A stretch of DNA of 64,000 bases from Macrostomum lignano (GCA_002269645.1 NIVC01001525.1:62001-126000), one strand, 5' to 3'. Shown: positions 6,451-59,836, counted from the stretch's first letter. Made by a program: numbers and translations. Notes: generated by a model not told the origin, from the sequence alone.

Positions 6451-6482
6451 CGCAGTAATTTGCATTCTCCCGCCGCCCGCAG

Positions 6483-7107
6483 GTACGGCGATATGGTCCC
6501 AATGACCATCGTAGGCAAAATCGTTGGCGGCATCTGCTCATTATCTGGCGTTCTGGTCATAGCCCTGCCAGTCCCGGTCATAGTGAGCAGCTTCTCAAGA
6601 ATTTACCATCAGAATCAGCGAGCGGATAAGCGGAAAGCTCAGAAGGTAAGAGAATTCTCGCATTCTGGAGATATATCTTACACTCATTTGGGAACCCCAA
6701 GGTACAGAGAGTGTACATGTCTAACGATTAGAAAGTCCTGTGCCGCTGTACACCCTCTTTGAGCAAGTGTTGGCGAGTCACTCCCCGAGTCTGTGCAACC
6801 CCCCCCCCCGCCACTGCAGAAGGCCCGCTTGGCGCGAATCAAAATGGCCAAAAATGCCTCCGGCGCCGCGTTTATCAGCAGCAAGAAGCGCGCGGAGGAG
6901 CGCCGCCGCGCCCACGCAGAGCTGCTGCAGGCCGCCGCTGCCGCCTCATCCGATGCTGACGGCCAAGGCGGACAGCTGGAGCTGCCGGACGAAACGGACG
7001 TGTTCGAGCTGCAGCACCATCACCTGCTCACCTGCTTGGAGCGGACTACGGTTGGTGCCTGTCTGTTTGTCTGTCTGTCTGTCTGTCTTAGTATCTGTCT
7101 GTGTGCC

Positions 7108-13230: not shown

Positions 13231-13709
13231 AAATTTTGCACCTTAGTTTGAATTTCAGGTTCTTATATCGTCTCTGCTAGCGATGCTCAAGTTTGTATTA
13301 TAATGCAATTCTTTACCTAAACATGATTTACCCTTTGTTAACTAAATTATTATGGGTCTTCTGTTTTTAGTAGAAATTCTAAAACCATAAATTACTTAAC
13401 TGAGTTACTGGCTAATTGAACGTCTATGTAAGTTTTTTGCTTGCAGATATTGTCATTACATGTAGGCCACTGGCTTGATTTTAGCGAATCTCATTTTGCT
13501 TTCCGGAAGTTTTTGATGCATATAGCAAATACATAATTCTTGAATTTGTCTGATGTGTTGAAGTGAATATTATTAGGTATTTTAACCTTTGTGTTTTAAC
13601 ATAATTATGTTAATGAGCATTTCAATTTAGGCTTACATTGTTTTTATTATTTTGCACACATCTTGACTGAAGTTACATAATGCATATAATCACTATGATT
13701 CTTCCCCTG

Positions 13710-14577
13710 GATCTTTGTTTCATCCTGATTCTCACTCTGAGTCTTTGATTCATCCTGATTCTCACTCTGAGTCTTTGTTTCATTCTTACTCTCACCCTGA
13801 GTCTTTGTTTCATTCTGATTCTCACCCTGAGTCTTTGTTTCATTCTGATTCTCACCCTGAGTCTTTGTTTCATTCTGATTCTCACCCTGAGTCTTTGTTT
13901 CATTCTGATTCTAACTCTGAGTCTTTGTTTCATTCTGATTCTAACTCTGAGTCTTTGTTTCATTCTGATTCTCACCCAGAGTATTTGTTTCATCCTGATT
14001 CTCACCCTGAGTATTTGCTTCATTCTGATTCTCACCCTGAGTATTTGCTTCATTCTGATTCTAACTCTGAGTCTTTGTTTCATTCTGATTCTCACCCAGA
14101 GTATTTGTTTCATCCTGATTCTCACCCTGAGTATTTGCTTCATTCTGATTCTCACCCTGAGTATTTGCTTCATTCTGATTCTAACTCTGAGTCTTTGTTT
14201 CATTCTGATTCTAACTCTGAGTCTTTGCTTCATTCTGATTCTCACCCTGAGTATTTGCTTCATTCTGATTCTAACTCTGAGTCTTTGTTTCATTCTGATT
14301 CTCACCCTGAGTATTTGCTTCATTCTGATTCTCACCCTGAGTATTTGTTTCATTCTGATTCTAACTCTGAGTCTTTGCTTCATCCTGATTCTCACCCTGA
14401 GTATTTGCTTCATTCTGATTCTCACCCTGAGTCTTTGTTTCATTCTGATTCTAACTCTGAGTCTTTGTTTCATTCTGATTCTAACTCTGAGTCTTTGCTT
14501 CATTCTGATTCTCACCCTGAGTATTTGCTTCATTCTGATTCTCACTCTGAGTCTTTGCTTCATTCTGATTCTCACCA
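13710..14577. repeat. Minisatellite, 30-bp unit
   Basis: CTGAGTCTTTGTTTCATTCTGATTCTCACC, highly homogeneous. It explains ORFs 13673..14578 and 13715..14596. Confidence 0.97.
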
Positions 14578-14704
14578 CAAATCAGTTTTATTCTGAGTCT
14601 TTGTCTTTGACTTTGAAATTCATCCGCCTTCATGATTTGTTCGAACCGCATTGGCAGTTTGAAAAATCAATAAAAAATTATTTTAACTCGCAAAGCTACC
14701 TGAA

Positions 14705-16925
14705 ATGTCTCTGCTGTGCTCCGTGTGCAGCATCCCGCTGTCCTGGGCCATCGCAGTCGCCTCGCTAGCCTACCTGGCTTATAAAATGTTCGATCGGAAG
14801 CGCAGAGCCGACCTGGCCGACATTCCCTCAGACTGGCTTTCGGTTCTGGTCACCGGTTGCGACACCGGCTTCGGTCACCAGCTGGCCCTGCGTCTGGCTG
14901 GCAAGGGCTGGTGCGTCCTGGCCGGCTGCCTCACCCAGGCCGCTGTGGACAAGTTCTCGGCCATGGGCAATCAAAATCTGGTCCCGATTCGGATGGATGT
15001 CACTGACGAGGAGTCGGTGAAGTCTGCCGTAGCGAAGGCGGAAGTGGCGTTGAAAGACCGCAAGCTGTGCGGCCTGTGGGGCGTGGTTAACAACGCTGGC
15101 ATCAGCGGCAGCAGGATCGGCCCGACAGAGTTCCTCAGCGCCGACGATTTTCATCAGGTGTTTGCCGTTAATGTCTTCGGAATCGCTAACGTGACCAGGT
15201 GAATGCTTGATCTAGCCAATGCAGCAATGTGCCAAAATGGTGCATGTAGGGTAACCCATGTGACTCCCTTACGCCACGACACCCGTAAATGAGTTTTCAC
15301 AGCTACATGTGTCTGGTGGGGGCCGCAACCCAGAGATCTAACGCGGAGCTTCTATGTGCCAGCGGCCCAGGCTCGATTCCAAGTGCAGTCACATTAATTT
15401 GGGGCTGAATTGGAATCTCGGCTTGGCTCTGTTCGTGCAATTAACGGCCTTGAGAGCCAACCCCCCAAGGCGCAGTGAAGTGTACATGTCTAACGATAAA
15501 TAAAGTTAGGGCCGCTGTACACTCCTGTGTGAGTGTGTGCCTGTACGTATGACTGCGTACGACATTGCCTGTCGCCGGTTGTGACAATGCGCCCTGCCTT
15601 TATTTGTAATAAAAACATGACTGATCTCTGTAAAACTTGCTCGCAGGTCTTTCCTGCCACTGATGAGGCGCCTGCCAGCAGGCCGGCTGGTGAACACCTC
15701 CAGCATCTTTGGCCGATTCGCCTCGCCCGGGGCTGCGCCGTATTGCGCCTCCAAGTTTGCTGTGCAGGTGAGCGAATCTGTGAGAATAGCCTTAGCCGGC
15801 AGCTGGTCATCATTGAACTCTGTATTAGTGTGAAGCTGTAAATGAAGATCTAGGAAATATTATTATTATTATTATTAATGATGCTAGCGAGCACTCGATG
15901 TTTGAAGAGGCTGGGGGAGCAGTCAGTGGCGGTCAAGGGGGTCAGGCCGATGCTCAGCAGGTCCTCCGTCAGAGTGGCCCGCAGGTGGTTGTGTGGGCGC
16001 TTGGCCTCGGCGTAGGGGCTCCATTGGGTTGGCATCAGCATCAGGGTTGGCCAGAGAGAATTAAGGCCACCCGCCGACCATGGCTACGGAGGCAGCGGCC
16101 CACCTGGAGCAGTCGGCGTCCAGAGCAGCAGAGCGAGTTTCCGTGATGGGGACCGCCTCCAGCCCATAGAGCAGGATGTGCTCCACGGCTACCCTGAACA
16201 TCCGGATCTCAGTGTTGCCAGTGGTGCTGAAGTTGAAAATCTGTTATGACAATTGGTCGCATGATCGGGACGCCCGGGGACTTAAACTCCTGGCAGACGG
16301 TATTGTCAGAGTCGAGGTAGTCTCAGATGAAGCACCTTGGTCTTTTTGACGCTAATCTGCAAAAGAGCGTCAAGATGTGATGTACGATTTTAGATGTGAA
16401 AAATGGTAAAAATTAGACAGGGTAGCTTTCAAAGCTTAAGTATTTGGATTCAGGAGCGCTTGCTGCTGATCAAGACGTCACTGCGGCTCCTTGAATGCCG
16501 ACGCCATCCCGCAGGCCCTCAGCGACTGCTACCGTCGCGAACTGCGCCAGTTCGGCATTCGGGTGTCGTGCATCGAGCCCGGCTTCCACCGGACGCCCAT
16601 CACCGACAAGGCCGCGCTGACCCGCGCCGTCAACCTCGGCTATCAGGACGCCCCGGCGGAGCTCAGGGACGCCTACGGAGAGTCGTTTCGTCGCGAGAGT
16701 GTCGACCGGCTTGACGACCTGCTTCGGTTCTGCTCGGACAGGCTGGACAAAGTTGTCGACGCGTACGAGGAGGCGCTGACTTCGAAGCATCCGCGCTGCC
16801 GGCACATGATTGGCTGGGATGCGAAGCTTCTCTATTGGCCTCTGGCTGTGTTGCCCGAGTGCATCGGAGATACCCTGTTGGCGTTGAGGCTGCCCAGGGC
16901 CGCCAAGGCGAGGAAAAGTGCTTGA
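14705..16925 (+). CDS. Short-chain dehydrogenase/reductase (retinol/17-beta-HSD6-like), complete, 3 exons, 341 aa
   Basis: Exons 14705-15198, 15647-15767 and 16515-16925 (1026 nt, phases consistent). Has an N-terminal hydrophobic anchor, VLVTGCDTGFG (NAD-binding), GLWGVVNNAGI, catalytic YCASK and IEPGFHRT. Confidence 0.93.
15320..15600 (+). mobile_element. tRNA-derived SINE copy in SDR intron 1
   Basis: B-box-like GGCTCGATTCC followed by the body shared with the 20525-20806 and 39871-40090 copies. Confidence 0.72.
15858..16330 (-). mobile_element. 5'-truncated, degenerate RTE-like LINE 3' end in SDR intron 2
   Basis: The minus strand translates NTEIRMFRVAVEHILLYGLEAVPITETR, resembling the post-RT KIRLFxAxVESxLLYGxExW motif of RTE-clade LINEs. 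It ends in a (TAA)n tail at 15858-15876. Confidence 0.68.
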
Positions 16926-17285
16926 GATGATTAGCTGTATGAAAATTCTATAGTGGACTACTTAAAGTAGAACGGTGCCGAACTGATTAAAAAATAATTT
17001 GACCTTGAATGAATGATTGGTAAAGAATTAAATGTGCTATTTTTTGCTGAAAGATTTTCTTCCATTGATTTTTAACTATAACTATTATTTTTATACCGCA
17101 AAACACGTTTTAACTACTGTTGTGTCTCTGTCAGATGATTCCTATTGAAATCAACGCTAATTCGCCAATCTGGTAGAATGGCTTGCCAAATTTTTCGTAG
17201 TAACTTTTTGAAGAACCCAAAAAAAACAAGAATGACTTTTGTATTTTGGTAATTATTTTATAACTAAGCTACTCAATCTAGAGAT

Positions 17286-17470
17286 TGCAGCCTAGTATTT
17301 AGAGTGTCGAATTCACAACTGAAAGGTCGGGGGTTCGATTCTCCCGACGACCCTTTCAGTCCTTGGACTGAAAAGCCGTATGCAGCCTTCAGATGCGCCG
17401 CGCAAAAGCTGCGGCTGAGCTGTCGGTTGCACATCTGGCCTTAAGGGCAGGTGTAATCAATTGTAATTAT
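17286..17470 (+). mobile_element. Possible second tRNA-derived SINE (or tRNA pseudogene)
   Basis: A-box-like GCAGCCTAGTATTTAG, anticodon-loop-like TTCACAA and B-box GGGTTCGATTCTCC. The acceptor stem does not pair. Single copy in the window. Confidence 0.45.
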
Positions 17471-18549: not shown

Positions 18550-19251
18550 TAGCATAAAAATCAACCGATCGTGAGAATATCTTAACGGCCTCAGCTATTC
18601 GTATAGCGGATCACATGGCAGCAGTTGTGTTTGCAAAAAGTTTAAATATTTCTAACCGGCGAAGTTTCCACCGAAGCATGGCAGTTTGTTGCAATATACC
18701 AGAGAAGCAATCTCCGGGTTGTGAAATGTGCTCAGTTGAGCTGATTCTGGTAGCTGCTCTAGCTGGATGGCTGTTGCATTTCTACTGCTGCTGCATGAGT
18801 GGCTTTAGTGAGACTGAACTGCCAGTAAGTATTGTAAAAACTTTTTTGCCTGTCGCTGACGCAGTCCAACGGTCAACAACAATGACTTGTTTTTCCATTT
18901 TTAACAAAAACGCAGCCGATGCTTTTTGTCAATTTTTGCGTGCCAGCAGATTCCTTCATCCCTGATTCCGGTGCCTGGGATAGAAGGCTTCCTGCCCTCG
19001 CACACTCTGCTCTTGCTCAAGTAGCCAATACTCGTACTCTCACCACTTGTACAGGTAGCAGAGTGCGCAAGCATCCGTTATCTCATCTTTCAAGCCAATA
19101 GAATAAACTGTTTTCGGTTGCTCCATAGCCATGGTAATTTGAGCATCTCAGATGGGACAAGTTTATAAAAACAAGGCACGAGTCGGCCGCTGCTGGTGAC
19201 GAGCTATCAAAATATTCACGAACTTCGACTGCCTTGACGGATGAATTGGAA

Positions 19252-20456
19252 ATGCGGCTGACGCAAACAAGGGAGTTCTGCAGCATCCTGGCAGCCATGC
19301 TGACGCTACCGCAGGTGGCGCTCTCTGAGCAGCAACTGCCAGCCCTGAAGCTGATCAGCAGGTGTCCATCCCACTCGAGCCTGCCAGAGTTGACCTCCGT
19401 ACCGTCTGCCAGCGACCTGTTCGAGTGCGCTATAAAATGCGCCATGTCGGAGCTCTGCTCAGTGATGTACCTCTCCGGAGCCCAGACTGTCTTTTACCAT
19501 GCCAACACCCAGCAGCTGAGCGCCATGCTGCAGAGCAACGGCTCTGGTGAGTCCAGCGAGTGCGCCAGCTACTCCAAGGAGCTGCCAATGCTATCTGAAG
19601 CTCCAACCACCGAGCCAACGACAACTGAAGCTCCAACCACCGAGCCAACAACAACCGAAGCTCCAACCACCGACCCAACAACAACTGAAGCTCCAACCAC
19701 CGAGCCAACAACAACCGAAGCTCCAACCACCGCTCCGACGGCTCCAGCTCAAACTGCGACAACCAGTTCTGCGGTCCCTCAAATTCCTGGCCTAAGCAGA
19801 AACCTAACTTCTAAACTGCTCATTCTGTTCGACTTCAGGCAGGGCTACACAAACCTGGTGAACCCAGATAAGTACCTGGCCACTCTGAACGGCTCTGTCA
19901 CTCGGGACTCTCAGGGTGCATATTTTCGAGGCCATCCTAGCGACTTCATCCATGTTGACAACGACAACGACACGCTTGTGTCCGGCTTTCTGACAGCTGC
20001 CAATGACTTTACCTTCTTCGCCAGGCTGACCCGTCAAACAACCAATGTGCAAAACTATCACTGTTTTTTGAGCGAGATGGGAGCGGTCGGCTCTGGTCTT
20101 TTCTTTGATCAGAATGGTCGTCTTGGCGTCGATCACCTGTCCTCCGCTTTTGTGAAGGTGTCCCAGTTGACCGGCTCAGCTATAATGTTAGCCGACAACA
20201 CTGTGCAGCTGGTTTTAGTTGGAGCCGTCTTCAATGCAGGAACTCTTACCACATTTTATTTCGATGGATCATTTATTGGCGACGGACTCGCTTCGACGAT
20301 GCACCCCCCAAGGTTTTCCCGTTAGCCTGCTACTCGGCTACTGGGTTGACAGTAGCGGTGCCCTTCGGGGGCCGCATGATCTGCTATGCCATCGCCAAGG
20401 AGGCGCTCACCGAGACGGATTTGCAGCAGCTGGACAGCTTCTGCCAGAGTGTTTGA
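19252..20456 (+). CDS. Secreted PAN/Apple-mucin-LamG-like protein, paralog 1 (two +1 homopolymer frameshifts near the 3' end)
   Basis: Intronless. Signal peptide MRLTQTREFCSILAAMLTLPQVALS, Cys-pattern domain, 4 EAPTTEPTTT units and a LamG-like domain. The paralog 2 C-terminus is recovered by removing one C (~20305) and one G (~20370). Confidence 0.78.
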
Positions 20457-20524
20457 ACTGATTGATTGTGATCGAGAGACTGAACAGTCCACCATCTCTG
20501 CGATTCTCTGACATGTTGACATGA

Positions 20525-20806
20525 GGCAGGAACCCTGACGAACTTTAGGCGACATTGTCGCACAACCGGCGAGAGGCATTACTGCCCATGCCGCCGACTC
20601 CTCTGAGCAGGCGCACACGCACACGGGAGTGTACAGCGGCCCTAGCTTTATTTATTGTTCGACATGTACACTTCACTGTGCTTTGAGGGTCGGCCCTCAA
20701 GCCGAGATTCCAATTTATCCCCAAATTAATGTGACTGCACCTGAAATCGAGCCTGGGGTCCCTGACACATAAGAGCGCCGCGTGAGACCACTAGACTACG
20801 GCGCTC
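20525..20806 (-). mobile_element. tRNA-derived SINE, most complete copy
   Basis: The minus strand begins GAGCGCCGTAGTCTAGTGGTCTCACGCGGCGCTC...GGCTCGATTTC (A box TAGTCTAGTGG, B box), then the body shared with the other copies. Confidence 0.75.
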
Positions 20807-20859
20807 AACTCCTTGACATGTACTTTTATGTTCTTTATCACTGCATCCCATAACCTTCT

Positions 20860-21690
20860 ACTGTCTTTTATTGCATCTCACCCTCTCTCAATGTCTCAAA
20901 TTGCATCTCACCCTCTCCCAATATCTCCCATTGCATCCCACCCTCTCCCAATGTCTCCCATTGCATCTCACCCTCTCCTAATATCTCCTATTGCATCTCA
21001 CACTCTCCTAATATCTCCTATTGCATCTCACCCTCTCCTTTTATCTCCTGTTGCATCTCACCTTCTCCTAATGTCTCCCATTGCATCCCACGCTTTCCTA
21101 AAGTTTCTCATTGCATCTAAGCCTCTCCCAAGTTCTCCAATTGTATCCCACCCTCTCCTAATATCTCCTTTTGCATCTCACCCTCTCCTAATATCTCCCA
21201 TTGCATCTCACCCTCTCCTAATATCTCCCATTGCATCCCACTCACTATCTCCCAACGTCTCCTTTTGCATCTCACCCTCTCCTGATATCTTCCATTGCAT
21301 CTCACCTTCCCCTAATATCTCCCATTGCATCTCACCCTCTCCCAATATCTCGCATTACATCTCACCCTCTCCTAATATTTCCTATTGCATCTCACCCTCT
21401 CTTAATATCTCCTATTGCATCTCACCCTCTCCTAATATTTCCTATTGCATCTCACCCTCTCTTAATATCTCCTATTGCATCCCACCATCTCCCAATATCT
21501 CCTATTGCATCTCACCCTTTCCCAATATCTCCCATTGCATCCCACCCTCTCCCAGTATCTCTTATTGCATCTCACCCTTTCCCAATATCTCCCATTGCAT
21601 CTTCATCTCTCCTAATATCTACCATTGCATCTCACCCTCTCCCAATATCTCCTATTGCATCCCACCCTTTCTCAAAGTCTACTATTGCAT
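20860..21690. repeat. Minisatellite, 30-bp unit
   Basis: TTGCATCTCACCCTCTCCTAATATCTCCCA units. Confidence 0.95.
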
Positions 21691-22159
21691 TCCATCAGCT
21701 CCTTCTGTCTCTTGTATCAAATAAATGCTCCAGCAGTGCAACAAACTTAGTCCAAGCAATCAATTGAGTAGTTATTAAACTCTTAAATGTCTGCTTGTTC
21801 AGTTTTTTCCTATTATCTTTCTACTAATTATCGTCTAGAATCGATACGAGTTGAAGTTTGTGACTGTAGAATAATCTGCTGCCTGATTCTCAATACAATT
21901 CGTGTGATTTGGTGTAATAAAGTAGATACTAGTAGTGAATACTTGCGAGAATCATATCTCTTGTTTCTAAATCTTACTCCTGTTTTATTATTTCAAAAAA
22001 TAACAGAATCATTCTCTATATATTTCCTAACTTTTTTGAGAATCTCAGAAGTTCACGTTTGTTCTCATCTCTAAAACTTGTTTCTGATGATCCCGAAGAA
22101 TGAGCCTAAAAAGCAAACAGTGCCTATAGCAGGTAGCTTGTCTGTAAGGTGGAAAGCGG

Positions 22160-23060
22160 TAGATGTTGCATGAGATTAGATATGGAATCATCTAGATGTT
22201 GCTTGAGGTTAGATATGGAATCATCTAGATGTTGTATGAGATTAGATATAGAGTCATCTAGATGTTGCTAGAGATTAGATATGGAATCATCTAGATGTTG
22301 CTTGAGGTTAGATATGGAATCATCTAGATGTTGTATGAGATTAGATATAGAGTCATCTAGATGTTGCATGAGATTAGATATGGAATCATCTAGATGTTGC
22401 ATGAGATTAGATATAGAATCATCTAGATGTTGCTTGAGATTAGATATGGAATCATCTAGATGTTGCATGAGATTAGATATGGAATCATCTAGATATATTG
22501 CTTGAGATTAGATATGGAATCATCTAGGTGTTGCATGAGATTAGATATGGAATCATCTAGATATATTGCATGAGATTAGATATTGAATCATCTAGATGTA
22601 GCATGAGATTAGATATAGAATCATCTGGATGTAGCATGAGATTAGATATAGAATCATCTAGGTGTTTCATGAGATTAGATATGGAATAATCTAGATGTTG
22701 CATGAGATTGAAAATGGAATCAGTCAGATGTTGCATGAGATTAGAGATGGAATCAACCATAGGTAAGGGGAGATTAGAGATGGAATTAACCAGATGTAGT
22801 GTGAGATTAGAGATGGAATCAGGAAGGTGTAGGGTGAGATTAGAGATGGAATCAGCCAGATGTAGGATGAGATTAGAGATGGAATTAGCCAGATGTAGTT
22901 TGGAATTAGACATGGAGTCAGCAAAGTTTAGGGTGATATTAGGGACGGAATCAGCCAGATGTTGTGTGAGATTAGACATGGAGTCAGCAAAGTTTAGGGT
23001 GATATTAGGGACGGAATCAGCCAGATGTAGTGTGAGATTAGGCATGGAATCTGCAAGGTG
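22160..23060. repeat. Minisatellite, 33-bp unit, diverging toward the right
   Basis: TAGATGTTGCATGAGATTAGATATGGAATCATC; the units after ~22700 are progressively more diverged. Confidence 0.94.
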
Positions 23061-23932
23061 TAGGGTGACCACTATTTTAGCTACTATGAGTAGTATTGAT
23101 ATAGTTTCATTTATAGCAATGGTTTTCTGTCAACACACTGGTCACCGGTCACTAAAAACAGTCGTGTTAGAATGAACGCCACTTTATACTACAGCATGCA
23201 ATACCTACTATTACACTACTGCAAAAATCATCAACTGAATCAGAAACTCAGCCACACTACACTCATATTGCGTGCAATTAAAAGTCAAACTGAATCGTAG
23301 CTTTCTGTCGACTTTTTGAGCTCATTTTTGACACCCTCTGTTCCCGACGACAAACAGCTTTTAAGGAGAGCAGAATGAGTCTTCTGCAACACTGGCACTG
23401 GGATACAGGCGTACGCACTTAAGCTCTCTCTCTCGACAAGCCAACCAACACTCAGCAGTAGCGAGAGACAATTACTAGCTTCATTGACTTCTCTAAAGAG
23501 TTAACTTTCAATAAGAAAAGCTGCATCCTACAGTCAGCGATAATTGATTTTTGTTACTTACCTCCTTCGCTTAGAGCCTGTGGTAAAACACTTTCAAAAG
23601 GTGTCTTCCCGTGCTACTTTTCCAAGAAAGACAGCTCTAACCCAGGTTCCATTGTTTGCAAGTTGCGCCACTTAGTGTACAGTACCGTCGATTCTACCTG
23701 TGTTTGATTAGAGCCCGCGCTACCCGTCTGTCTTCTCTCCAACCAATAAGAAGCCACTGTTATCAAACGCTTCATAGAAACCGGTTTGAGAATCTGAGAT
23801 GAAAATAATTCGTCACCCTACTCCAAAGACCACTGGAAGGAGTGACATCCCACACTAGGAAACAGACACCTTGCTCAGCGGCTTCTAAAAAAGTTTCTGA
23901 AAACCTATATTATTCTATTAACTCCGTTTACA

Positions 23933-25639
23933 ATGAGACTCAGGCTAAATAGCGAGTTCTACTTTGTCGTGGCAGCCATGCTGATGCTGCCGCAGGTGGC
24001 GCTCTCTGAGCAGCGACTGCCAGCCCTGAAGCTGATCAGCAGGTGTCCATCCGACTCAAGCCTGCCAGAGTTGACCTCCGTACCGTCTACCAACGACCTG
24101 TTCGAGTGCGCTATAAAATGCGTCATGTCGGAGCTCTGCTCAGTGATGCACTTCTCCGGAGCCCAGTCTGTCTGTTACCATGCCAGCACCCAGCAGCTGA
24201 GCGCCATGCTGCAGAACAACGGCTCGGGTGAGTCCAGCGAGTGCGCCAGCTACTCCAAGGAGCTGCCAATGCTATCTGAAGCTCCAACCACCGAGCCAAC
24301 GACAACTGAAGCTCCAACCACCGAGCCAACAACAACTGAAGCTCCAACCACCGAGCCAACAACAACTGAAGCTCCAACCACCGAGCCAACAACAACTGAA
24401 GCTCCAACCACCGAGCCAACGACAACTGAAGCTCCTACCACCGAGCCAACGACAACTGAAGCTCCTACCACCGAGCCAATGACAACTGAAGCTCCCACCA
24501 CCGAGCCAACAACAACTGAAGCTCCAACCACCGAGCCAACGACAACTGAAGCTCCAACCACCGAGCCAACGACAACTGAAGCTCCAATCACCGACCCAAC
24601 AACAACTGAAGCTCCACCCACCGAGCCAACGACAACTGAAGCTCCAACCACCGAGCCAACGACAACTGAAGCTCCAACCACCGAGCCAACGACAACTGAA
24701 GCTCCAACCACCGACCCAACAACAACTGAAGCTCCAACCACCGAGCCAACGACAACTGAAGCTCCAACCACCGAGCCAACGACAACTGAAGCTCCAACCA
24801 CCGAGCCAACGACAACTGAAGCTCCAACCACCGAGCCAACGACAACTGAAGCTCCAACCACCGAGCCAACGACAACTGAAGCTTCAACCACCGAGCCAAC
24901 GACAACTGAAGCTCCAACCACCGCGCCGACGACTCCAGCTCAAACTGCGACAACCAGTTCTGCGGCTCCTCAAATTGCTGGCCTGAGCTCAAACCTAACT
25001 TCGAAACTGCTCATTCTGTTCGACTTCAGACAGGGCTACACAAACCTGGTGAACCCAGATAAGTACCTGGCCACTCCGAACGGCTCTGTCACTCGGGACT
25101 CTCACGGTGCCCATTTTCCAGGAGGAAGTACTGATAACTACATTGAGGTGGACAATGATAACGCTACACTTGTATCAAATTTCCTGACAGCTGCCAATAA
25201 TGTTACATTCTATGCTAAGCTGACACGTCAAACAAATGTTTCCCAAGACTATCATTACTTCTATGACTGCATGTATAAAACACCTGCCGGACGATTTGGT
25301 GATCTGAATGGTAAAATTGGTGTTGGACACGTATTTTCTGCTTCAAACGTGGTTGCTCGCTTGAGCAACTCGGTTTTAATGTCAACTGACGACACACCCC
25401 AGCTGGTGTCAGTTGGGGGCGTGTTCAATACAGGAAATCTTACGACACTTTATTTCAATGGATCATTCATTGGCCCTGGAGTCGATTTTTATGCCAAACC
25501 TTCTGGATCCCCTGTCTGCCTGCGACTCGGCTTCTCGACTCAAAGTAAATCTGCTCTTCGCGGCCGCATGATTTGCTACGCCATCGGCAAGGAGGCGCTC
25601 ACTGAGACCGAGCTGCGGCAGCTGGACAGCTTCTGTTAG
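23933..25639 (+). CDS. Secreted PAN/Apple-mucin-LamG-like protein, paralog 2, intact, 568 aa
   Basis: Single ORF: signal peptide, PAN-like C..C...C...C pattern (ECAIKCVMSELCSVMHFSGAQSVC), 21 EAPTTEPTTT units, and a ConA/LamG-like C-terminus (LYFNGSFIG...LRGRMICYAIGKEALTETELRQL). Domain names are from motif recognition, not a database search. Confidence 0.88.
   Translation: MRLRLNSEFYFVVAAMLMLPQVALSEQRLPALKLISRCPSDSSLPELTSVPSTNDLFECAIKCVMSELCSVMHFSGAQSVCYHASTQQLSAMLQNNGSGESSECASYSKELPMLSEAPTTEPTTTEAPTTEPTTTEAPTTEPTTTEAPTTEPTTTEAPTTEPTTTEAPTTEPTTTEAPTTEPMTTEAPTTEPTTTEAPTTEPTTTEAPTTEPTTTEAPITDPTTTEAPPTEPTTTEAPTTEPTTTEAPTTEPTTTEAPTTDPTTTEAPTTEPTTTEAPTTEPTTTEAPTTEPTTTEAPTTEPTTTEAPTTEPTTTEASTTEPTTTEAPTTAPTTPAQTATTSSAAPQIAGLSSNLTSKLLILFDFRQGYTNLVNPDKYLATPNGSVTRDSHGAHFPGGSTDNYIEVDNDNATLVSNFLTAANNVTFYAKLTRQTNVSQDYHYFYDCMYKTPAGRFGDLNGKIGVGHVFSASNVVARLSNSVLMSTDDTPQLVSVGGVFNTGNLTTLYFNGSFIGPGVDFYAKPSGSPVCLRLGFSTQSKSALRGRMICYAIGKEALTETELRQLDSFC
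24278..24922 (+). repeat. Coding VNTR, 30-bp unit (EAPTTEPTTT) x21
   Basis: GAAGCTCCAACCACCGAGCCAACGACAACT. Only 4 units in paralog 1 (19597-19716). Confidence 0.97.
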
Positions 25640-28600
25640 AGCGCCTGAACTGCCTGCCGATGAGTTATTGGATCTTGTCTCTGTTCGAACACTCCTTCAG
25701 TTTATCGATTTTTTGTGTATCTCCCACCTTCCCTCGGCAAAAGTCTGTATCACACATGCTTTGACTGAATTGCCATCGGAGAATGCTTACTGAGGTTTTC
25801 TTCTAGGGAAACACTAGTAGGATGGACCAAGGGTACAGGCTAAGTGGGGAAACATTCTCGTATCAACTGCAAGTTACATGCCATGTTACCTTATTATTTA
25901 AGATTTCTGGAGTCAAAGACAGTGTGTCGATTAAGACGCCTGAAGGTTTTGTCGGCCAGTGAGGGTTGCATAAAGACGTGACACGTGACAGGTTACAAGT
26001 TTATAAGTGGGGAAGCTACCTGCGAATCAAGTTTTGCATTTCAAGAAAGCACTTGTATATTTACTTGACAAGTTATGGCCACACTGGACTCGACTGTTGG
26101 CCTGTTTTTTCAGTCTCTATAGACAGAAAAAAGGTTTTTAACAACTACTATAGTCAGTAATCACTCGTCATTTTTCAACTGTTTGTGGCTTGTCAAGCGT
26201 CTAACAATGGAAATCATGATTTGCGGTACTTGTCACTTATCACACTTGTAGTCGCGACAAGTTTTCTATGCAACACCCTTTGGACAAAAAATAATTTGTG
26301 AATATTATACAATTCTCTCCCGCATTGACAAAATATCTATTCAATCATTTACTTTAATTTTTTCGATCCATTCAAAAATGAAATTTACTCTTTTAACCAA
26401 CGCTATCAATGCTAATATTACTATCAGTAAGTACGGCATGTCAGAAATTTATCCCAACTATTGTTTTCTTTCTGCTTCACATACTTAATATTTTTAAATC
26501 TCTCGACGAAATTAGTTTTTGTTTCTATATTTTCTACTCTGTATTTTAAGCTTCATGTTTTCTGTCATGTTCTGGGTTCCTTCGTTACCGCGTTTCACTT
26601 GAAACTGCAAGCTGTCTCTCTGCTTCAATTTTTTTCTAAGCTTGGTAAAATAACAAATTCTGATTGACCGTAATAATTTCTGACTCAGTTGTCTGTTTCA
26701 AGGAATAGCTTAGAATAAACCAATCCTAATCCAATCAAATTCTAATCAATATTTACGTCTATTAATCCAGTTTCTCTCCTTCCAAATCTTTTGTTGACCC
26801 GTCCATTGAGCCAGGGGTGTTTAAAATGCAATAACCATATCTATATTTTGATACTGCTTAAGGATAATGAGTTTCAAAAGGAGACAAATACTACTTTAAG
26901 CAAACTGGGTTGCTTTGCGCATTGACACCATTGGTGTGAAGTGTGATTATGACGCACCCAGCTCGTAGGAAGAGCGACTCGTAGGATTCCGTGAGGGGCG
27001 CTTTCACAAGGTCCAAAGTTCACAACGTCGAAAAGTAAATTATTTCACAACGTCGAAAACTTAATATAACAAAAACTATGCAGTAGTTTTCTACGTTGTG
27101 AAATTTCGAGCTTATGTATTTTCGAACTTGTGAAAGTGGTTGTATTTGAGTTTTCGATGTTGTGAAATTTCGACGTTGTGAAATTTTGAGTTTGTGAACC
27201 CCCCCCCCAACCAAAGCTCCAACAACCACAGCATCAACGGTGCGAGGGTTGGACGGATTAAAGCCACCCCAATCAGTTTTCTCATATATCTTATTTCAGA
27301 ATAGTCCAAGAGAAATTGTTCACTGGCGCATAGAGTGGCGACTTTTCAATGTTGCTGAGTATAACATTGTTGATAAAGCTAGCTGTTAAAAGCTAGCTGT
27401 AACTGATTGTTATTCTTTTACAATTTTAAACTGTATTTCTATTAGCAGACATAAGCCCGTGCTCACAGGCTTCCGTGTCTCATAGTGGGTCACTTACTAA
27501 ATGGCGTTTTATTCGCGCGGCGCTTGTATGAAAATATGCCGTTTTGAAAGCGCTCGCAGAATTCTTTCGTCAGTTGGCTTGGCTACTTTCTGACAGAGAC
27601 GGCTTCAACTCACGCTTAGTTGTACGCAGCTGTGCTCTTGCATGTACGGCGCCGTTTTTACACGTACGCGACCGGCCCGCCGCTCAGCTCTTCAGCCAAT
27701 AAGTAGACACTGTTTTCAAGCGTCGCATTCAAGCGTCAACTCAAAGACCATTGAGAAGATTGACAGCCCATACAGAAGACTTTACAGGAAATTGAAGTAC
27801 TGCTGAACTTGAAGCTTCAAAGCATCCGCGTTGTCCGTTAAATAGAAATGCACCCGAGTCTTACGAGCGAATTCTGCCGCACGCCTTCTGTAAACTCCAT
27901 ATACTAAAAATGTGATGTTTGTTTGTTTGTACGAAATCGATTTTCTCCTGAATGGCTTGACCGATTTTGTTCGAATTTGCACTGTTCGATCAGAAATTTT
28001 CCCGTGACGGTACATGCATCGTGGCTAAGAAATTGCTCGATGCTAAAGGCATTAAATATTCGAAAAACATGCTTTTTTGCAAAGGTCAAGCAAAGTTTTC
28101 GACTTGAAATGCATTGTAAGAATGCTAGAGAATAATTGTACTAAATATACAACTTAAACTTTTCAGATCTCTATAGAAAACACCTAGTACATGTAAAACT
28201 TCCGCTAAAGAATATTCTATAATATATGACAGTGTTCATGAATTTATCATTTATAATTGAAGGTGCCGCAATCGCGAGGGGCGCCAATATTTGGCGCTTG
28301 GTGGGCGCCCCTACCTGACGTTTTGTTCGGTAACTTTGGAAAGCAAAAATTTCACACTGGATTTCGGGTTTCGGTTGCTGTTCTAACGTGCATTCCAAAC
28401 CTCCTGAAATTCCCCCAAGCTGTTAGGAAACGTAGTATTCAGATCGCTCGACAAAAGACACTCATGCCTCAGCTTCTGAGGAAGCCTTCCCTAAGAGGAT
28501 TTTTACTACTCAGAAAGGCGGCTGGCGCCGCAGGCACACGTCGCAAGCCCAAGCTAAGAAGGCTTCCCCAACAGCTGCTGAGAGTAAAGTTTTACTCACT

Positions 28601-28950
28601 CGCGTGTCTGCCTTGCTGACACGTCCCGATGGTCAGGAACAATTAAACTGCGTGTATGCATTCTTTTTAGAAACTCAGACGGATTTTTTTTTTCAAAAAA
28701 CGACTTTGCGAGAGGGAGCCATCCATCGTTAAAGACAATGACGACTTTCTATCATCGTTAAATGTATCTCAAGTAAGAGATAAGAATAGAGTGTCATCAC
28801 AAGTGAGTCACTGAAGCCACTTTCTCTCGTACTTGCAGCCCCTCGTTCCTTCTTCCATTTCTACTGGTGTACATTACCAGTACACTGTTTATATCCGCTC
28901 CATAGCAACAAGTTCAAGCAGAAGTATCCGAGATAGGACGATATTGATTT

Positions 28951-28956
<6 letters not shown>

Positions 28957-29001
<45 letters not shown>
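28957..29001. repeat. (GA)n microsatellite
   Basis: Direct. Confidence 0.95.
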
Positions 29002-29002
<1 letters not shown>

Positions 29003-29770
29003 TCAATCTAGTCTCTAAACACACGAAATCCCAGCCACTTCTTCTAAATGTTCAGTTGTCTAATAAGAGAACGATTTAATTTACCAAGAGGATTAACGTC
29101 ATCGAACTCTTTACTTGAACCAACCGCAACCGCAAGAGTGCGCCATAACAATTTGCTGACAGAAATCCGGGTGCTCAAAAATGGCGTCTTCTTCTATAAG
29201 TCTCAGAATCAGAATCTGTGTTGGGATAGTTGTTTCGTAATCAGAGTCAATGGAAAATCATTGAACTTATTAGGGTAAAATCTTCTTTCATGGATGTGTT
29301 CTTAGCTGTTCTATCCTTATCCAGCTCTTTTTTGTCAGGGATTTCGGCAGTTTGGGCTTGCATTTGTACACAAGTTGGCTTAACCTATAAGAACGAAAGT
29401 AATTTTGACGTCTGAGAGGTGGAGCTTTGTGAATGAGATTTAGGGTTATTGTTGGGTTAACATTTACCATATTTAGAATTCGCAAGAGAAGCTTACTGAA
29501 AACCGGTTACTTAACGATACGAGAATGATCTGCATTCTCTTTTTCACGTGGTATTACTATAAGTAGAGTATTGCTGACGAATGTGCTTTCTTTACATGCA
29601 AATAATAGCATGTAATATTCTGAAGTCATCAGCACTAGTACCGCATTAGACTCTGTATACTCCTGCGAGCTTTTTTGCGCGTCTCTACAAGAAGATCGGC
29701 AGCCCACACTTGGGTTTACAGGAGACTGATGCCTGTTATTCGTGTATATTTTGTTATGCCTAGCTTGACA

Positions 29771-30094
29771 ATGACCCTCAGGCTGAATATTAAGTTCTTC
29801 ATCGTGGTAGTCATGCTGATGCTGCCGCAGGTGGCGCTCTCTGAGCAGCGACTGTCGGTCCTGAAGCTGATCAGCAGGTGTCCATCCGACTCGAGCCTGC
29901 CAGAGTTGACCTCCGTACCGTCTGCCAACGACCTGTTCGGGTGCGCCACGAAATGCGTCATGTCGGAGCTCTGTTTAGTGATGCACTTCTCCCTAGCCAA
30001 GTCAGCCTGTTACCATGCCAACACCCAGCAGCTGAGCACCATGCTGCAAAACGGCAGCTCCAGCGAGTCCAGTGAGTGCGCCAGCTACTCAAAG
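29771..30094 (+). pseudogene. PAN-mucin-LamG paralog 3, 3'-truncated (signal peptide + PAN only)
   Basis: MTLRLNIKFFIVVVMLMLPQVALSEQ...ECASYSK is homologous to paralogs 1 and 2. Homology stops abruptly ~70 bp before the mariner. Confidence 0.82.
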
Positions 30095-30164
30095 GGCGAC
30101 ATAAAGTTGTCAACAACAACATCTTTGCTGGAGTGCTGCTCTTATACATTTGTCATACTCACTA

Positions 30165-31466
30165 AGACTCAGAAAGTTCTTAGCCTGAACAAGAAAACAG
30201 CAACAAATGAACTAAAAAACGACTACAAGTGCTCAAAATACTCTCCACCGGCATTGATACAGGCTTGCATCCTGTGAAACCAGCTGTCGAAGCAATGCCG
30301 CCAATCCTCATCCCGGAGCTCCTCGATGATGTTTTTGAACTCATTTACAGCTTCTCCCGGTGAAGAAAAGACCTGGCCCTTCAGAATCTCCTTGCACTTT
30401 GGAAACAGAAAAAAGTCGCACGGTGCCAGGTCTAGACTGTACGCAGGGTGAGTCATCAGCTGGACCCCATAGTCAGCCAGAAACTCGAAAGTTTGAGCCG
30501 CCGTGTGCGCACTGGCGTTGTCGTGGTGCAGAAGCACCCCGCGCATTCCGCACCTTGGGCGCCTCTGGCTCACAGCAGAAAAGACTTTGGGTAGGCAAAC
30601 CGTTGTGTACCAGTCAGCGGTGACTGTCTGGCGATCTTCAAGTGAAACGGAAGCCACATGCCCAGTGCGCATGAAGAAACAGGCCACCATCTGCTTGCCG
30701 ACACTCCGGCTGCGTCGAAACTTGGTGGGGCTGTCCTCGTCTCCAAAGATCCACATGGCTGACTGGCGCTTACTTCCGGGGTCGTATTGATAAATCCAGG
30801 TCTCATCGCCCGTGAGGATGTCCCAGATACGCTGGCTGGTCCCAGATTCGAATTTCTGCAGCATGAATCGGCACCAAGCCACCCTGGTGTCCTTCTGCAC
30901 GTCAGACAGCTGATGGGGGATCCACCGGGAAGCCAGCTTCCGCACTCCAAGGTGTTCATGCAGAATGGCGTGCGCACTCCCCGATCCAATACTGATCTCC
31001 TGCTGGATCTGCTGGTGGGTCACTCGCCGGTCAGCGGCAATCATGCTGGACACAGCGCAGATATTTTCTGGAGTCACTGCGTCACAGGGTCTCCCGGATC
31101 GATGTTCATCTTCGAGGCTTTCTCGACCTCGGCGAAACTCAGCAAACCAGTTTTTGACGGTTGCGTATGAAGGACATAGATGGGTGAAAACGTTCTGTAA
31201 AGTTTGATACGAATCGGCCGGCGACTTGCCTTGCTTGAAGTGCAAGTACATCATTGCTCTGAAGTCGCGATTTTCCAGCTTCATTGTTGAATTGAAGAAC
31301 TCAGGGGGTGAACTGACTTTAACTCGCTGCAGTGGACTCAAAAGTGGCTGCTTCTGTTTGAAAATTTTGCTACGATACTTTTAAAAGTTAGTCTTTACCA
31401 TAGACAAGTTTCATGCTTCTACGTCTCGTGGATCCTACTCAGGCTAAAGACTTTCTGAGTGACCCT
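30165..31466 (-). mobile_element. Full-length mariner transposon (~1.3 kb)
   Basis: 5' TIR TA|AGGGTCACTCAGAAAGTCTTTAGCCTGA (31468). 3' TIR TA|AG[ggtc missing]ACTCAGAAAGTTCTTAGCCTGA (30163). TA at both ends. Confidence 0.9.
30223..31284 (-). CDS. Mariner DD34D transposase, uninterrupted, 353 aa
   Basis: From the ATG at 31284: HTH region, WIPHQL (WVPHEL-like), TGDETW, HHDNASAH, YSLDLAPCD. Counted 34 residues between the 2nd and 3rd Asp. Confidence 0.95.
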   Translation of the reverse strand: MKLENRDFRAMMYLHFKQGKSPADSYQTLQNVFTHLCPSYATVKNWFAEFRRGRESLEDEHRSGRPCDAVTPENICAVSSMIAADRRVTHQQIQQEISIGSGSAHAILHEHLGVRKLASRWIPHQLSDVQKDTRVAWCRFMLQKFESGTSQRIWDILTGDETWIYQYDPGSKRQSAMWIFGDEDSPTKFRRSRSVGKQMVACFFMRTGHVASVSLEDRQTVTADWYTTVCLPKVFSAVSQRRPRCGMRGVLLHHDNASAHTAAQTFEFLADYGVQLMTHPAYSLDLAPCDFFLFPKCKEILKGQVFSSPGEAVNEFKNIIEELRDEDWRHCFDSWFHRMQACINAGGEYFEHL

Positions 31467-40830: not shown

Positions 40831-42717
40831 TCAGGTGAGCATGAGAATCTCTAGCTGCTTGAAGATGTAACAGTACCCGTCTGTGATGTTCTTAGGAGCA
40901 TTTCCAGCCCGAACGATTCCCTTAGCTCGGTCTGCAGCTGGAAAATTCAGCGCTGTCGGGTAGTTAAAGTACTTGCCGAACGGACCTGAGGCATGGCAGC
41001 ATGCCTGCCACTGAGGCTGGTACACTTGGGCACAGTTCGATCCATGGAGGCATGTACTCAATCCACAATCTCGAGTCTGAAACTGGATGTTATCGCCAAA
41101 AAACAAGTTCCACTACAGACCTTCATCAGGTGCGAATGTAGAGTTAGACACCGTGTAGTTTGTGCTCTCGGCCAGAATGAGCACGTTTACGTAGTAGGCG
41201 TAGATGTTGGTGACGTTTCGGTTGCGAAACCGGATGTTGTTGGGCTGAGCGCTGGTGCGATTGTGCAGCCACTCCAGGCCTATGAAATCATCCCAGTTGG
41301 CAAGTCTTTCAGAACACAATTTGAAGTTATACTATTGAGTACAAATTTTTGTCTCACCTACCGTGATAAGTGCCGAAGCCCGTCTTGTACTCGGCCCAGA
41401 GCCGGTCGAAGCTCAGCGCGTCCGACACTCGCAGGTTGACGGTCTCGAAGCACTGCTTAGTGCCCACAGTATAGAACTCCTGCGGTTGGAAGTTTAATTT
41501 GCAACAAAGAAAAGTTTCTACAGTGACAGCACCGATCAGGCACTGCTTTCCCAACACTCACATAGACGGCCAGCTCAGAGCTGCCCGGCGGCTGCTTGAA
41601 CTAGCGGCACAGCGGGTAGTCGGTGAGCAGAGAGCAGTTGCTGGAGTTGAACACAATCCCGCGACAGGCCGGCACCTCGCTGCACTTGGCAACGCAGCCA
41701 ATGAGCGATGAGGCAGCCGGCTGGTGCTGAAGGAAGGAGGCGAAGATCTTCACGAGTTGTTGGGAATGTGGACCCGCTTGTGAGTCACGTTTCTAGGAGC
41801 CAGGTACTCTGTGAAATGAAGGATCAGGGTTTTGATCTCAAGCGGTAAATTTATCAATGAAAAACTATCAAAGCTTTAGCTGTATGCCCGCTGAGACGAT
41901 TGCGGACTCGTTTTTAAGCTTCAAATTCGTAGTAATTTTTTCTGTTATGTGATAAAATGACTCAAAAATCTGCTGCAAATCTTTTGCCACGAAAGATTAA
42001 ATGCATTATGCATATATTCTATCAACTTTAAATTGGTTACATGACTTATTTTGTGAGAACCCACTTCAGTTTGGTGATAGTGGCTGTAGAGCCATGTTCC
42101 GGCCTCTGCTTCCTACAAGAAGCTCATCTGGATTTGATTGTTTCTGGCTCCTCGCATTATGGCTCGTGGTAGCTTGTAATGAGTCCAAAGTGATCAAATT
42201 TCGTTACTCGTGAGGAACTAACCGAGTAGATGCTCGATGTCTGTCATTATTCATTTTCGCAAACTCACCGAGTAGGAGGCCGCTGTTAGTGCCTCTGAGC
42301 ACCTGCTGCTCAAAGTTGCGAGCCTTCCAGATCTTCACATGTGCTCAAGCCGAAACTCCCTAGCAACGAAGCTACCGTTGCTCAAGCCCGGCTCGCTCAC
42401 AGTGTTGATGACTAGCATTTGGCATTCGAGCATTGCCACTTCCTTGAGGACATCTCCGAGCACTTCATCAGGCAGTGCGAGTTCATGTGCAGGCCAGTCC
42501 CATTGAGAAGCTTGCTGCTCACGTAGTTGCCGATGCTGATGGAGTCGCTGGTCACCCGATCGTAGGTGCGAGCAGTTATGGCGCTGTTAGCGGAGGTGGC
42601 CACAACTAAAATGGGTGTTAGTAAGTAGTGAGCGCAGTGCCACATTAGCGAGCCTAATGTGAGCAGCTGGTACAGAAGCAGCAGCAGCAGCTCGGCCTGC
42701 TCAGCGTTCAGATTCAT
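40831..42717 (-). pseudogene. PAN-PAN-fibrinogen gene Y (copy A), full exon set but disabled
   Basis: Exon equivalents 42717-42269, 41808-41562, 41479-41362 and 41279-40831. Lesions: 16-bp deletion and a further 1-bp loss in exon 2; 1-bp deletion and TGG>TAG in exon 3; +1 frameshift in exon 5; first donor lost. Confidence 0.85.
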
Positions 42718-44715: not shown

Positions 44716-44829
44716 CTGGCGTTACGAAATTTCGTGGCACTAAAATAAAGGCGCAGCCATCGCGCAATAAAATGTTATTTAATTAACGCAATTTTTTGCC
44801 TTAAGTTCTCTATTTTGCAATGACGGAAA

Positions 44830-52866: not shown

Positions 52867-52980
52867 CTGGCGTTACGAAATTTCGTGGCACTAAAATAAA
52901 GGCGCAGCCATCGCGCAATAAAATGTTATTTAATTAACGCAATTTTTTGCCTTAAGTTCTCTATTTTGCAATGACGGAAA

Positions 52981-59100: not shown

Positions 59101-59836
59101 TAACAATAAATAGGCAGCCTTGATAATAATACAAAGAAAATTAAAAGGCTCGTAGCCAGTTCAACGCTGGCTAAACATTTTACCACGTCGAGTTTACATC
59201 TTAGTACATGATGTTTTCAGTAACGACGCCGTTGAACGTCAAGTCAAGAACTTTGCTTCACTGGTTGTTGGTTGGTTTCTTTTCATAAGATTCGATGAGA
59301 CTTCATTAGTAATTTTCCAAAACTCACCGAGTAGGCGGCCGCTGTCGGTGCCTCTGAGCACCTGCTGCTCAAAGTCGCGAGCCTTCCAGATCTGCGCCCC
59401 GTCCTCAAGCCGAATCTCCCTAGCAATGAAGCTGCCGTTGCTCAGGCCCGGCTCGCTCGCAGTGTTGATGACGAGCATCCGGCATTCGAGGATCGCGGCT
59501 TCCTTGACGATCGCGACAGCGCAGGACGTCGCCCAGCACTTCATCAGGCAGTGCGAGTTCGTGTGCAGGCCGGTCGCATTGAGCAGCCCGCTGCTGACAT
59601 AGCTTCCAATATCGACTGAGCCGCTGGTCACCTGATCATAGCTGCTGTCGATGACGCCAGCGTAGCTCACAGCTGCAATGGTTTTCAGTGAGTAGTGAGT
59701 GCGATGCATTTTGTGCACAATAATCACAAGTGTCTCCACCAAGGCGGCACTATTTACATGTACGTTCAGACTCACCCATGAGCAGCTGGCACAGAAGCAG
59801 CTGCAGCAGCTCGGACTGCTTTGAGTTCAATTTCAT
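56148..59836 (-). CDS. Secreted signal peptide-PAN-PAN-fibrinogen-related-domain protein (gene X), intact, 5 exons, 414 aa
   Basis: Exons 59836-59776, 59672-59328, 58485-58238, 57755-57623 and 56605-56148 (1245 nt, phases 1,1,0,1). MKLNSKQSELLQLLLCQLLM; HCLMKCWATSCAV; GCVDKCSELLACRGIVFNSSNCSLL; FDRLWAEYKTGFG, GLEWLH, HWHGCCHNSGPFG, GIAW, YSFKQLELLM. Confidence 0.87.

Follow-up and report, generated by a model that had tools for sequence, protein, structure and literature searches.

The 64-kb window analyzed here (64,000 nt of Macrostomum lignano NIVC01001525.1, with coordinates counted from its first letter) carries on its plus strand three tandem paralogs, starting at 19252, 23933 and 29771, which probably specify a secreted, two-headed protein with a PAN-like and a ConA-like domain held apart by a minisatellite-encoded stalk. 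In this reading the stalk would be O-glycosylated, the protein would act as a spacer or cross-linker, and the copies are old duplicates that have since been homogenised. What the evidence so far describes is a modular secreted protein without a name, not a new kind of system.

Copy 2 is the sole clearly intact member among the three, and consists of a single-exon ORF of 568 aa (23933..25639, stop codon included). When its N-terminal domain was used as a tblastn query, matches were returned at 19252-19593 (82% aa identity, E 3e-59) and 29771-30055 (80% aa identity, E 2e-47). Together with the ORF calls, these bear out the three tandem paralogs described in the first-pass annotation, although their signal peptides and PAN domains had been called near-identical, which overstates protein identities of this order and DNA identities to copy 2 of 93% (copy 1) and 88% (copy 3). 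Beyond copy 2, a C-domain search of the window gave a sole match, at 19765-20444 in copy 1. In copy 1 (19252..20456, plus strand) a signal peptide and PAN-like domain are followed by a short stalk and a diverged ConA-like domain, while copy 3 (29771..30095, plus strand) is a gene fragment confined to the first two of these parts. Copy 3 ceases to resemble copy 2 at about 30095, its ORF continues through unrelated sequence up to 30277, and a homology search of the window found neither a stalk nor a C-domain 3' of it, confirming that the third copy is without both. A mariner-like element with 22-nt inverted ends (30167..31460, minus strand; 372-aa transposase ORF at 30223..31341) starts about 70 bp beyond the end of the copy 3 homology; its insertion was considered as the direct cause of the truncation and was rejected because of this gap to the inverted end and the lack of a downstream remainder. 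Upstream of the cluster there is a tRNA-derived SINE (17278-17462), of which an 88-bp part is 90% identical to M. lignano DNA.

Copy 2 begins with a predicted signal peptide (MRLRLNSEFYFVVAAMLMLPQVALS, cleaved before EQ; 23933..24007, plus strand, read from sequence) that has a basic n-region, a hydrophobic core and A-L-S at positions -3 to -1. Kyte-Doolittle maxima occur at residues 5-9 only, the N-terminus being the sole hydrophobic segment of the protein, which contains eight N-X-S/T sequons and ten cysteines. The next segment (24008..24274, plus strand) is a PAN/apple-like domain with cysteines at 38, 59, 63, 69, 81 and 104, a six-Cys framework in keeping with the 4-6 cysteines and roughly 70-90 residues of PAN/apple domains, and C38, C59, C63 and C69 are invariant or almost so across the family alignment. 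In Pfam scans, copy 2 scored below the cut-offs (PAN_3, 17.4 bits, E 0.004; PAN_1, 14.3 bits, E 0.037), copy 3 reached exactly the gathering cut-off of PAN_3 (21.1 bits), and PAN_1 matched six of ten family members (best E 1.2e-4). The AlphaFold model of this head is of medium confidence (mean pLDDT 65.5); almost all of its best Foldseek matches are PAN/apple proteins, but at E 0.07-1 and TM 0.36-0.51. The structural alignment drew on just 11-12 sequences. A second family of Cys-containing ORFs in the window, one of which lies at 59239..59775 (minus strand), was examined as possible kin of the PAN-like head and discarded (hhalign probability 1.6%).

The stalk of copy 2 (24278..24937, plus strand) is made of 21 EAPTTEPTTT-type units and one degenerate unit, and that of copy 1 (19597..19746, plus strand) of four EAPTTEPTTT units and one degenerate unit, counts that are read from one assembly and belong to a kind of array that is readily mis-assembled. 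TRF gave a period of 30 bp in both, with 21.9 copies in copy 2 (24276-24933, 96% matches, score 1197) and 4.6 copies in copy 1 (19595-19732). The 4 versus 21 units noted at first inspection are therefore upheld as 4+1 versus 21+1, as is the idea of a coding VNTR, since the stalk is a coding minisatellite that differs in copy number between paralogs. Units are almost identical between copies 1 and 2, and the 660-bp repeat of copy 2 is in frame throughout, with mostly synonymous differences between units. The full linker of copy 2 (231 aa: T 109, P 45, E 41, A 27, or 47% Thr and 19% Pro) is a tandem repeat of the Pro/Thr/Ser-rich kind by which mucin-like (PTS-domain) proteins are recognized. In the favored account, slippage or unequal crossover lengthened or shortened the stalk. 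Tandem repeats make up 26% of the 64-kb window.

The C-terminal head (24986..25636, plus strand), identified by AlphaFold2 and Foldseek, is a ConA-like jelly-roll domain with four cysteines. Its AlphaFold2 model (pLDDT 85.6, pTM 0.86) has 15 strands arranged in the two-sheet beta-sandwich of the ConA-like lectin/glucanase superfamily, and Foldseek returned 295 PDB matches at E <= 1e-3, the best of them lectin-like ConA-superfamily modules (probability 1.0, TM 0.5-0.66). At the sequence level, PDB chains gave chance-level matches only, for this head as well as for the PAN-like one. Its sole Pfam match is to Laminin_G_3 (E 0.007-0.015, 15.9-16.9 bits, the cut-off being 27.6), limited to profile positions 80-150 and the last 70 residues of the domain, and there were no Pfam matches to Laminin_G_1 or Laminin_G_2. 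Since the Laminin_G_3 match is sub-threshold, the domain is not a formal LamG member. The domain layout first proposed stands as far as the signal peptide, PAN-like head, Thr/Pro stalk and ConA-type head are concerned (Pfam, AlphaFold, Foldseek), and the Foldseek check suggested for the C-terminal fold did find the expected ConA-like fold, but the label 'LamG' is too specific.

Compared with copy 2, copy 1 has two +1 indels, one in a C6 run (20302-20313) and the other in a G5 run (20363-20375), because of which its frame-0 ORF stops at 20325; the conserved C-terminus runs on in other frames to 20456. A conserved PAN cysteine is changed to phenylalanine (TGT to TTT, within 19489-19503). The damage to copy 1 is probably recent, but both indels lie in homopolymers and could be assembly errors, in which case the gene may be intact. 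Cys446 and Cys529 are both present in copy 2, P0040, P0047, P0046 and P0043, and both missing from copy 1, P0049 and P0050. This all-or-none pattern points to a disulfide that was lost in a coordinated fashion and, at the level of sequence comparison, speaks for a copy 1 that stayed functional over a long period.

Over C-domain codons 65-185, copies 1 and 2 differ with pS 0.59 (dS > 1), dN 0.34 and a dN/dS of about 0.3, while dS falls to 0.14 over the first 65 codons of this domain and to 0.03 over the mature N-domain. Judged by these rates, the copies are shown to be old duplicates kept under purifying selection, not recent insertions. The 5' two-thirds, from the signal peptide through the PAN domain and stalk to about codon 65 of the C-domain, underwent a recent homogenisation, to which the almost identical stalk units also point; the likeliest mechanism is gene conversion, or else unequal exchange.

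Neighboring genes are spliced, as had been claimed: a short-chain dehydrogenase gene falls into two parts, 14705-15202 and 16491-16925, between which profile positions 117-158 are absent, and a Kv4-like channel gene and an ankyrin/kinase gene are also in pieces. M. lignano genes average 4.9 introns (PMC5730564), so a single-exon gene is atypical, and the copies resemble one another from within a few bases of the ATG to about 13 nt past the stop. Both observations fit a retrogene family, in which a processed mRNA was reverse-transcribed, inserted and amplified, and which would account for the absence of introns. We nevertheless consider such an origin improbable. A 93-bp block with a CCAAT motif, a candidate core promoter, lies upstream of copy 1 (19062..19154, plus strand), and a homologous block with CCAAT precedes copy 2 (23710..23801, plus strand) at ~68% identity, with a local alignment score of 24 against 11.3±1.3 (maximum 17) for shuffles; the block can be seen in another alignment as well. 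The presence of this significant block, 100-190 bp before the ATG of both copies, indicates duplication at the DNA level. The 1.2 kb downstream of each copy contain no A-run of seven or more, and on these two results retroposition of each copy was rejected. Saturated divergence of old duplicates, combined with conversion of the coding region, accounts for the confinement of similarity to coding sequence. Moreover, M. lignano relatives at unlinked loci are likewise intron-poor, one having a single-ORF coding region and another one intron of ~70 nt, so that any retroposition would be older than the family and not visible here. From these gene structures, low intron number is a family trait, and the retroposed founder put forward in the first-pass annotation finds no confirmation.

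An exhaustive phmmer search with the C-domain against 1.84 billion representatives (about 15 billion proteins) returned seven uncharacterised relatives, five of them named as M. lignano and two probably from it too, with UniParc accession numbers close to those of the named entries. They include PAA58135.1/PAA45948.1 ('Apple domain-containing protein'), A0A1I8H603 ('Lectin_legB domain-containing protein') and PAA86160.1, and identity among family members is 22-48%. The relatives have a signal peptide, a PAN-like six-cysteine module and a C-domain of ~230 aa in identical order, and the C-domain ends in ...L(R/K)LG(F/Y)S...C(Y/F)...L...C, as in copy 2. They differ in having a short, non-repetitive linker where copy 2 has its 231-aa repeat stalk, and in being singletons within ±10 kb at the two loci examined, as opposed to the tandem array seen here. 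Protein searches with copy 2 gave nothing above 41% identity; at full length they were dominated by the repeat, and all matches were Thr/Pro-rich proteins, bacterial or other. The family alignment, used as a profile, retrieved just one of its own members, a metagenome contig scan with a single C-domain gave no relative, and exact look-ups in public records of copy 2, the transposase, an ankyrin ORF, P0040 and P0042 found none on record. The Macrostomum literature and supplements searched contained no description of the family and no mention of the relatives' M. lignano gene identifiers. As far as these searches reach, the family is found so far only in Macrostomum flatworms, unnamed and uncharacterised, in agreement with the initial remark that it matched no named protein family.

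In the interpretation we favor, the copy 2 protein would be exported and its stalk densely O-glycosylated, which would turn the stalk into an extended, negatively charged rod. Mucin length is ~0.25 nm per residue, and at this value the stalk of copy 2 would extend ~50-60 nm versus ~15 nm for copy 1. The two heads are predicted to bind two ligands, glycan or protein, giving a possible spacer or cross-linker for a secretion or extracellular matrix. If this function is correct, the cluster offers a compact case of the assembly of a lineage-restricted secreted protein from two old binding folds, with a linker stretched to a mucin-like rod by a minisatellite-prone genome and tandem copies that exchange via conversion. 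Because transgenesis and RNAi both work in Macrostomum, a model for adhesion, regeneration and sexual conflict, an uncharacterised secreted family is directly testable there.

Other readings of the same protein are less probable. Glucanases belong to the ConA-like superfamily, and modular glycosidases typically carry O-glycosylated linkers rich in Pro and Thr, so that the C-domain might be a glycoside hydrolase, with the PAN domain as binding module and the Pro/Thr stretch as linker, in the manner of microbial carbohydrate-active enzymes. A secreted enzyme is very unlikely, however, as Pfam scans of ten members gave no glycoside hydrolase family at E <= 1, and the best 50 Foldseek matches are non-catalytic and lectin-like, namely toxin receptor-binding subdomains and sialic-acid-binding CBM40. 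The three lesions in copy 1, the truncation of copy 3, the richness of the region in repeats, plus a transposon, and the absence of the exact copy 2 product from public gene calls (with nothing above the identity limit given earlier) would all suit a decaying locus, where every copy is a relic and the copy 2 ORF has survived by chance. This too is highly improbable, given that copy 2 is intact over 568 aa with all six PAN and four C-domain cysteines kept, that dN/dS is about 0.3 over the saturated part of the C-domain, and that the 660-bp repeat has kept its frame, its unit differences being mostly synonymous.

A more specific role in Macrostomum (seminal fluid, egg coat, adhesive glands or pathogen recognition), instead of a general matrix or mucus component, is also unlikely, if less remote. 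Tandem duplication, conversion and length variation are common in reproductive and immune proteins; all three are seen in this family, which is confined to one lineage and very divergent (22-48% identity). Against this, the M. lignano seminal-fluid and adhesion screen literature searched contained no PAN/apple or ConA-like proteins, the relatives' gene identifiers were not found in the supplements searched, and dN/dS is never above 1 where it is reliably measurable. It is quite doubtful, too, that the minisatellite acts as a heritable dial by which individuals or paralogs come to differ in the distance between PAN and ConA-like heads (~15 to 60 nm), tuning a Macrostomum-specific secretion while conversion among the tandem copies spreads novel combinations of head and stalk. 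Such a dial would set the cross-linking of targets in adhesive, egg or seminal material or in a pathogen-binding layer, and would make this a lineage-born two-headed binder of glycan or protein without counterpart outside macrostomid flatworms.

Among known systems, the PAN-like head finds its best Foldseek matches in PAN/apple proteins (plasminogen and HGF N-domains, factor XI apple domains, leech saratin, and apicomplexan microneme lectins such as SML-2 and MIC4). It shares with them a length of ~80 aa, the six-cysteine pattern and, in its medium-confidence model, a predicted helix packed against a sheet, at 13-22% identity, but none of these joins a PAN to a ConA-like domain via a mucin stalk. 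The structures nearest to the C-terminal head are the lectin-like N-terminal subdomain of clostridial neurotoxin receptor-binding domains and CBM40, which share its two-sheet jelly-roll of ~215 residues (TM ~0.6 over ~230 columns); identity is 10-16%, indicating a common fold only, and the flatworm protein is without a toxin-like translocation or catalytic part. It lacks the VWD, C8, TIL and cystine-knot domains of gel-forming mucins (no Pfam match at E <= 1) and the SEA and transmembrane parts of membrane mucins. The likeness to mucins with coding VNTRs lies in the perfect, Pro/Thr-rich tandem repeats, encoded by a minisatellite and varying in copy number between gene copies, though compared with mucins the flatworm stalk is acidic (41 Glu) and the whole protein, at 568 aa, is small.

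Three paralogous coding regions occupy the + strand from 19.2 to 30.1 kb. Copy 2 (23933..25639, +) is a single uninterrupted ORF of 568 aa, and protein-versus-DNA matches of its N-terminal 114 aa to copy 1 (19252-19593, +; 82%, E 3e-59) and copy 3 (29771-30055, +; 80%, E 2e-47) confirm the tandem set of three paralogs noted in the first-pass annotation. The C-terminal 234 aa of copy 2 match only copy 1 (19765-20444, +). The feature is real, and its description as a predicted secreted two-domain family with a VNTR stalk is correct; the family is unnamed and lineage-restricted.

At the N-terminus, a basic n-region and a hydrophobic core precede an A-L-S cleavage-type motif, and the only hydrophobic segment of the protein lies here; read directly from the sequence, this indicates that the copy 2 product is secreted and soluble. 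The first head contains six cysteines, and in copy 2 gives weak Pfam matches to PAN_3 (E 0.004) and PAN_1 (E 0.037), while the copy 3 version scores exactly at the PAN_3 gathering score and PAN_1 matches six of ten family members (best E 1.2e-4). AlphaFold models it with medium confidence (pLDDT 65.5), and the Foldseek matches are weak (E at least 0.07) and almost all to PAN/apple proteins, among them saratin, the N-domains of plasminogen and HGF, SML-2, MIC4 and factor XI; the head is assigned with moderate confidence as a divergent PAN/apple domain. The second head has no match to PDB by sequence, and gives a confident AlphaFold model (pLDDT 85.6, pTM 0.86) with 295 Foldseek matches to PDB at E <= 1e-3. 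The top matches are lectin-like modules of the ConA superfamily (TM ~0.6, 10-16% identity), namely a sialic-acid-binding CBM40 and, from clostridial neurotoxins, the N-terminal subdomain of the receptor-binding domain; the likeness, as modeled, is one of fold only. The ConA-like part of the ConA/LamG fold originally proposed for this domain is upheld by the model and by Foldseek, but strict LamG membership is not, as the Pfam match to Laminin_G_3 is sub-threshold.

The linker of 231 aa between the heads (47% Thr, 19% Pro, 18% Glu) is built on a 30-bp minisatellite encoding EAPTTEPTTT, and O-glycosylation would be expected for sequences of such composition. The earlier counts of 4 units (copy 1) and 21 units (copy 2) were reproduced, with one further degenerate unit in each. 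The window holds about 27 tandem arrays (period 14-70 bp), among them the stalk array, which lies in frame within the linker, and TRF arrays make up 26% of this minisatellite-rich animal DNA. Many of them produce long, spurious ORFs on both strands (e.g., 3221-5421, 8998-9804, 13673-14596 and 20813-21767).

An exhaustive phmmer search of 1.84 billion representatives with the C-domain recovered seven proteins (E 6e-47 to 2e-4), five of them named as Macrostomum lignano and the other two with UniParc accession numbers near those of the named entries. In these proteins, too, a signal peptide and a PAN-like module are followed by a short linker and the C-domain, and the repeat stalk, which is absent from all seven, appears to be a local innovation. 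No relatives of the C-domain were found in metagenome contigs, and no description of the family was found in the literature searched. The automatic names 'Apple domain-containing' and 'Lectin_legB domain-containing' independently match the two fold assignments. Public M. lignano gene models for the family are often faulty (genomic DNA L001, 10001-11181; protein records P0043, P0048 and P0053): one has a spurious 5' exon, and in others the family gene is merged with unrelated ones (an ankyrin/TRP channel, a transporter, a sirtuin), a fusion that accounts for misleading names such as 'Fibrinogen C-terminal' and 'GON domain-containing'. When the window was compared with 42 kb of M. lignano sequence, the one stretch that matched as DNA was a tRNA-derived SINE-like element at 17278-17462; its counterpart (L001, 12101-12374), which shares 88 bp (89.8% identical) and a tRNA-like head, adjoins one family relative. 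The match places the window in M. lignano or a close relative.

Among the three copies, only copy 2 reads as intact. Copy 1 (19252..20456) carries three lesions relative to copy 2, the first a TGT>TTT substitution through which the fifth PAN cysteine, almost invariant across the family, is lost. The others are +1 indels in a C6 and a G5 run, because of which frame 0 stops at 20325, and the well-conserved C-terminus (...RMICYAIAKEALTETDLQQLDSFC) continues in another frame to 20456. Both indels sit in homopolymers and could be errors of assembly, of a type to which the cysteine change does not belong. Copy 3 retains the signal peptide and first domain only, with homology ending at about 30095, and neither stalk nor C-domain was found downstream, as had been reported. 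About 70 bp past this point begins a mariner/Mos1-type element (30167-31460, -) bounded by 22-nt inverted ends; its transposase ORF of 372 aa (HTH_48, Transposase_1) is uninterrupted, and the element is possibly still active. A dead locus is an unlikely rival reading of this cluster: the lesions of copy 1 and the truncation of copy 3 speak for it, the open frame of copy 2 against it.

Divergence between copies 1 and 2 is strongly mosaic. Across the mature N-domain dS is 0.03, and over the first 65 C-domain codons 0.14, while codons 65-185 of the C-domain give pS 0.59 (dS > 1) and dN 0.34 (dN/dS ~0.3); the duplication is therefore old, and for most of the time since then purifying selection acted on both copies. 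Recent homogenisation, likely by gene conversion or unequal exchange, affected the 5' two-thirds, including the stalk. Two C-domain cysteines (Cys446 and Cys529 of copy 2) occur only together across the family, and both are missing from copy 1 and from the protein records P0049 and P0050, which suggests that the two form a disulfide and that some working paralogs do without it.

The neighbouring genes, a Kv4/Shal-like potassium channel, a short-chain dehydrogenase and an ankyrin/kinase gene, are all multi-exon, as noted previously, and a retroposed founder had been suggested for the intronless cluster. Similarity between copies is almost exactly coextensive with the coding region. Against a retrogene origin, a CCAAT-containing block of 93 bp upstream is common to copies 1 and 2 (score 24, versus 11.3±1.3 and a maximum of 17 for shuffles), and no A-runs were found in the 1.2 kb downstream of the three genes. 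Moreover, of the M. lignano relatives one consists of a single ORF and another has one intron of ~70 nt, in a species averaging 4.9 introns per gene (PMC5730564); intron poverty, going by these gene structures, is a trait of the family, and the retroposed founder is not sustained.

Elsewhere in the window, Rfam model RF00485 ('Potassium channel RNA editing signal') matches 6479-6591 (+; 79.4 bits, gathering score 51) within an exon of the channel gene, and this may represent conserved coding sequence instead of an editing hairpin. A direct tandem duplication of ~8.1 kb (41962-50136 and 50136-58019, 98.7-99.9% identity) has units differing in a (GGCGCCCCTGGTGCT)n array, with 39 copies (46556-47146) versus 21 (54709-55029). 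A second family of small ORFs (59239-59775, -; 42412-42717, -; ~50411-50737) is ~81% identical in DNA, carries a Cys motif (...NSHCLMKC...) and has no Pfam matches; a relationship to the PAN-like head was rejected (hhalign probability 1.6%, not significant).

The protein would be secreted, with a stalk that, if densely O-glycosylated, would form an extended, acidic rod. Should both heads bind ligands, the molecule would hence act within a secretion or matrix as a spacer or cross-linker. Rival readings take it for a secreted enzyme or tie it to one particular system, be it reproductive, adhesive or immune. The family combines known folds with a mucin-like VNTR stalk gained here; what is new is the domain combination and the family itself, not the kind of system.
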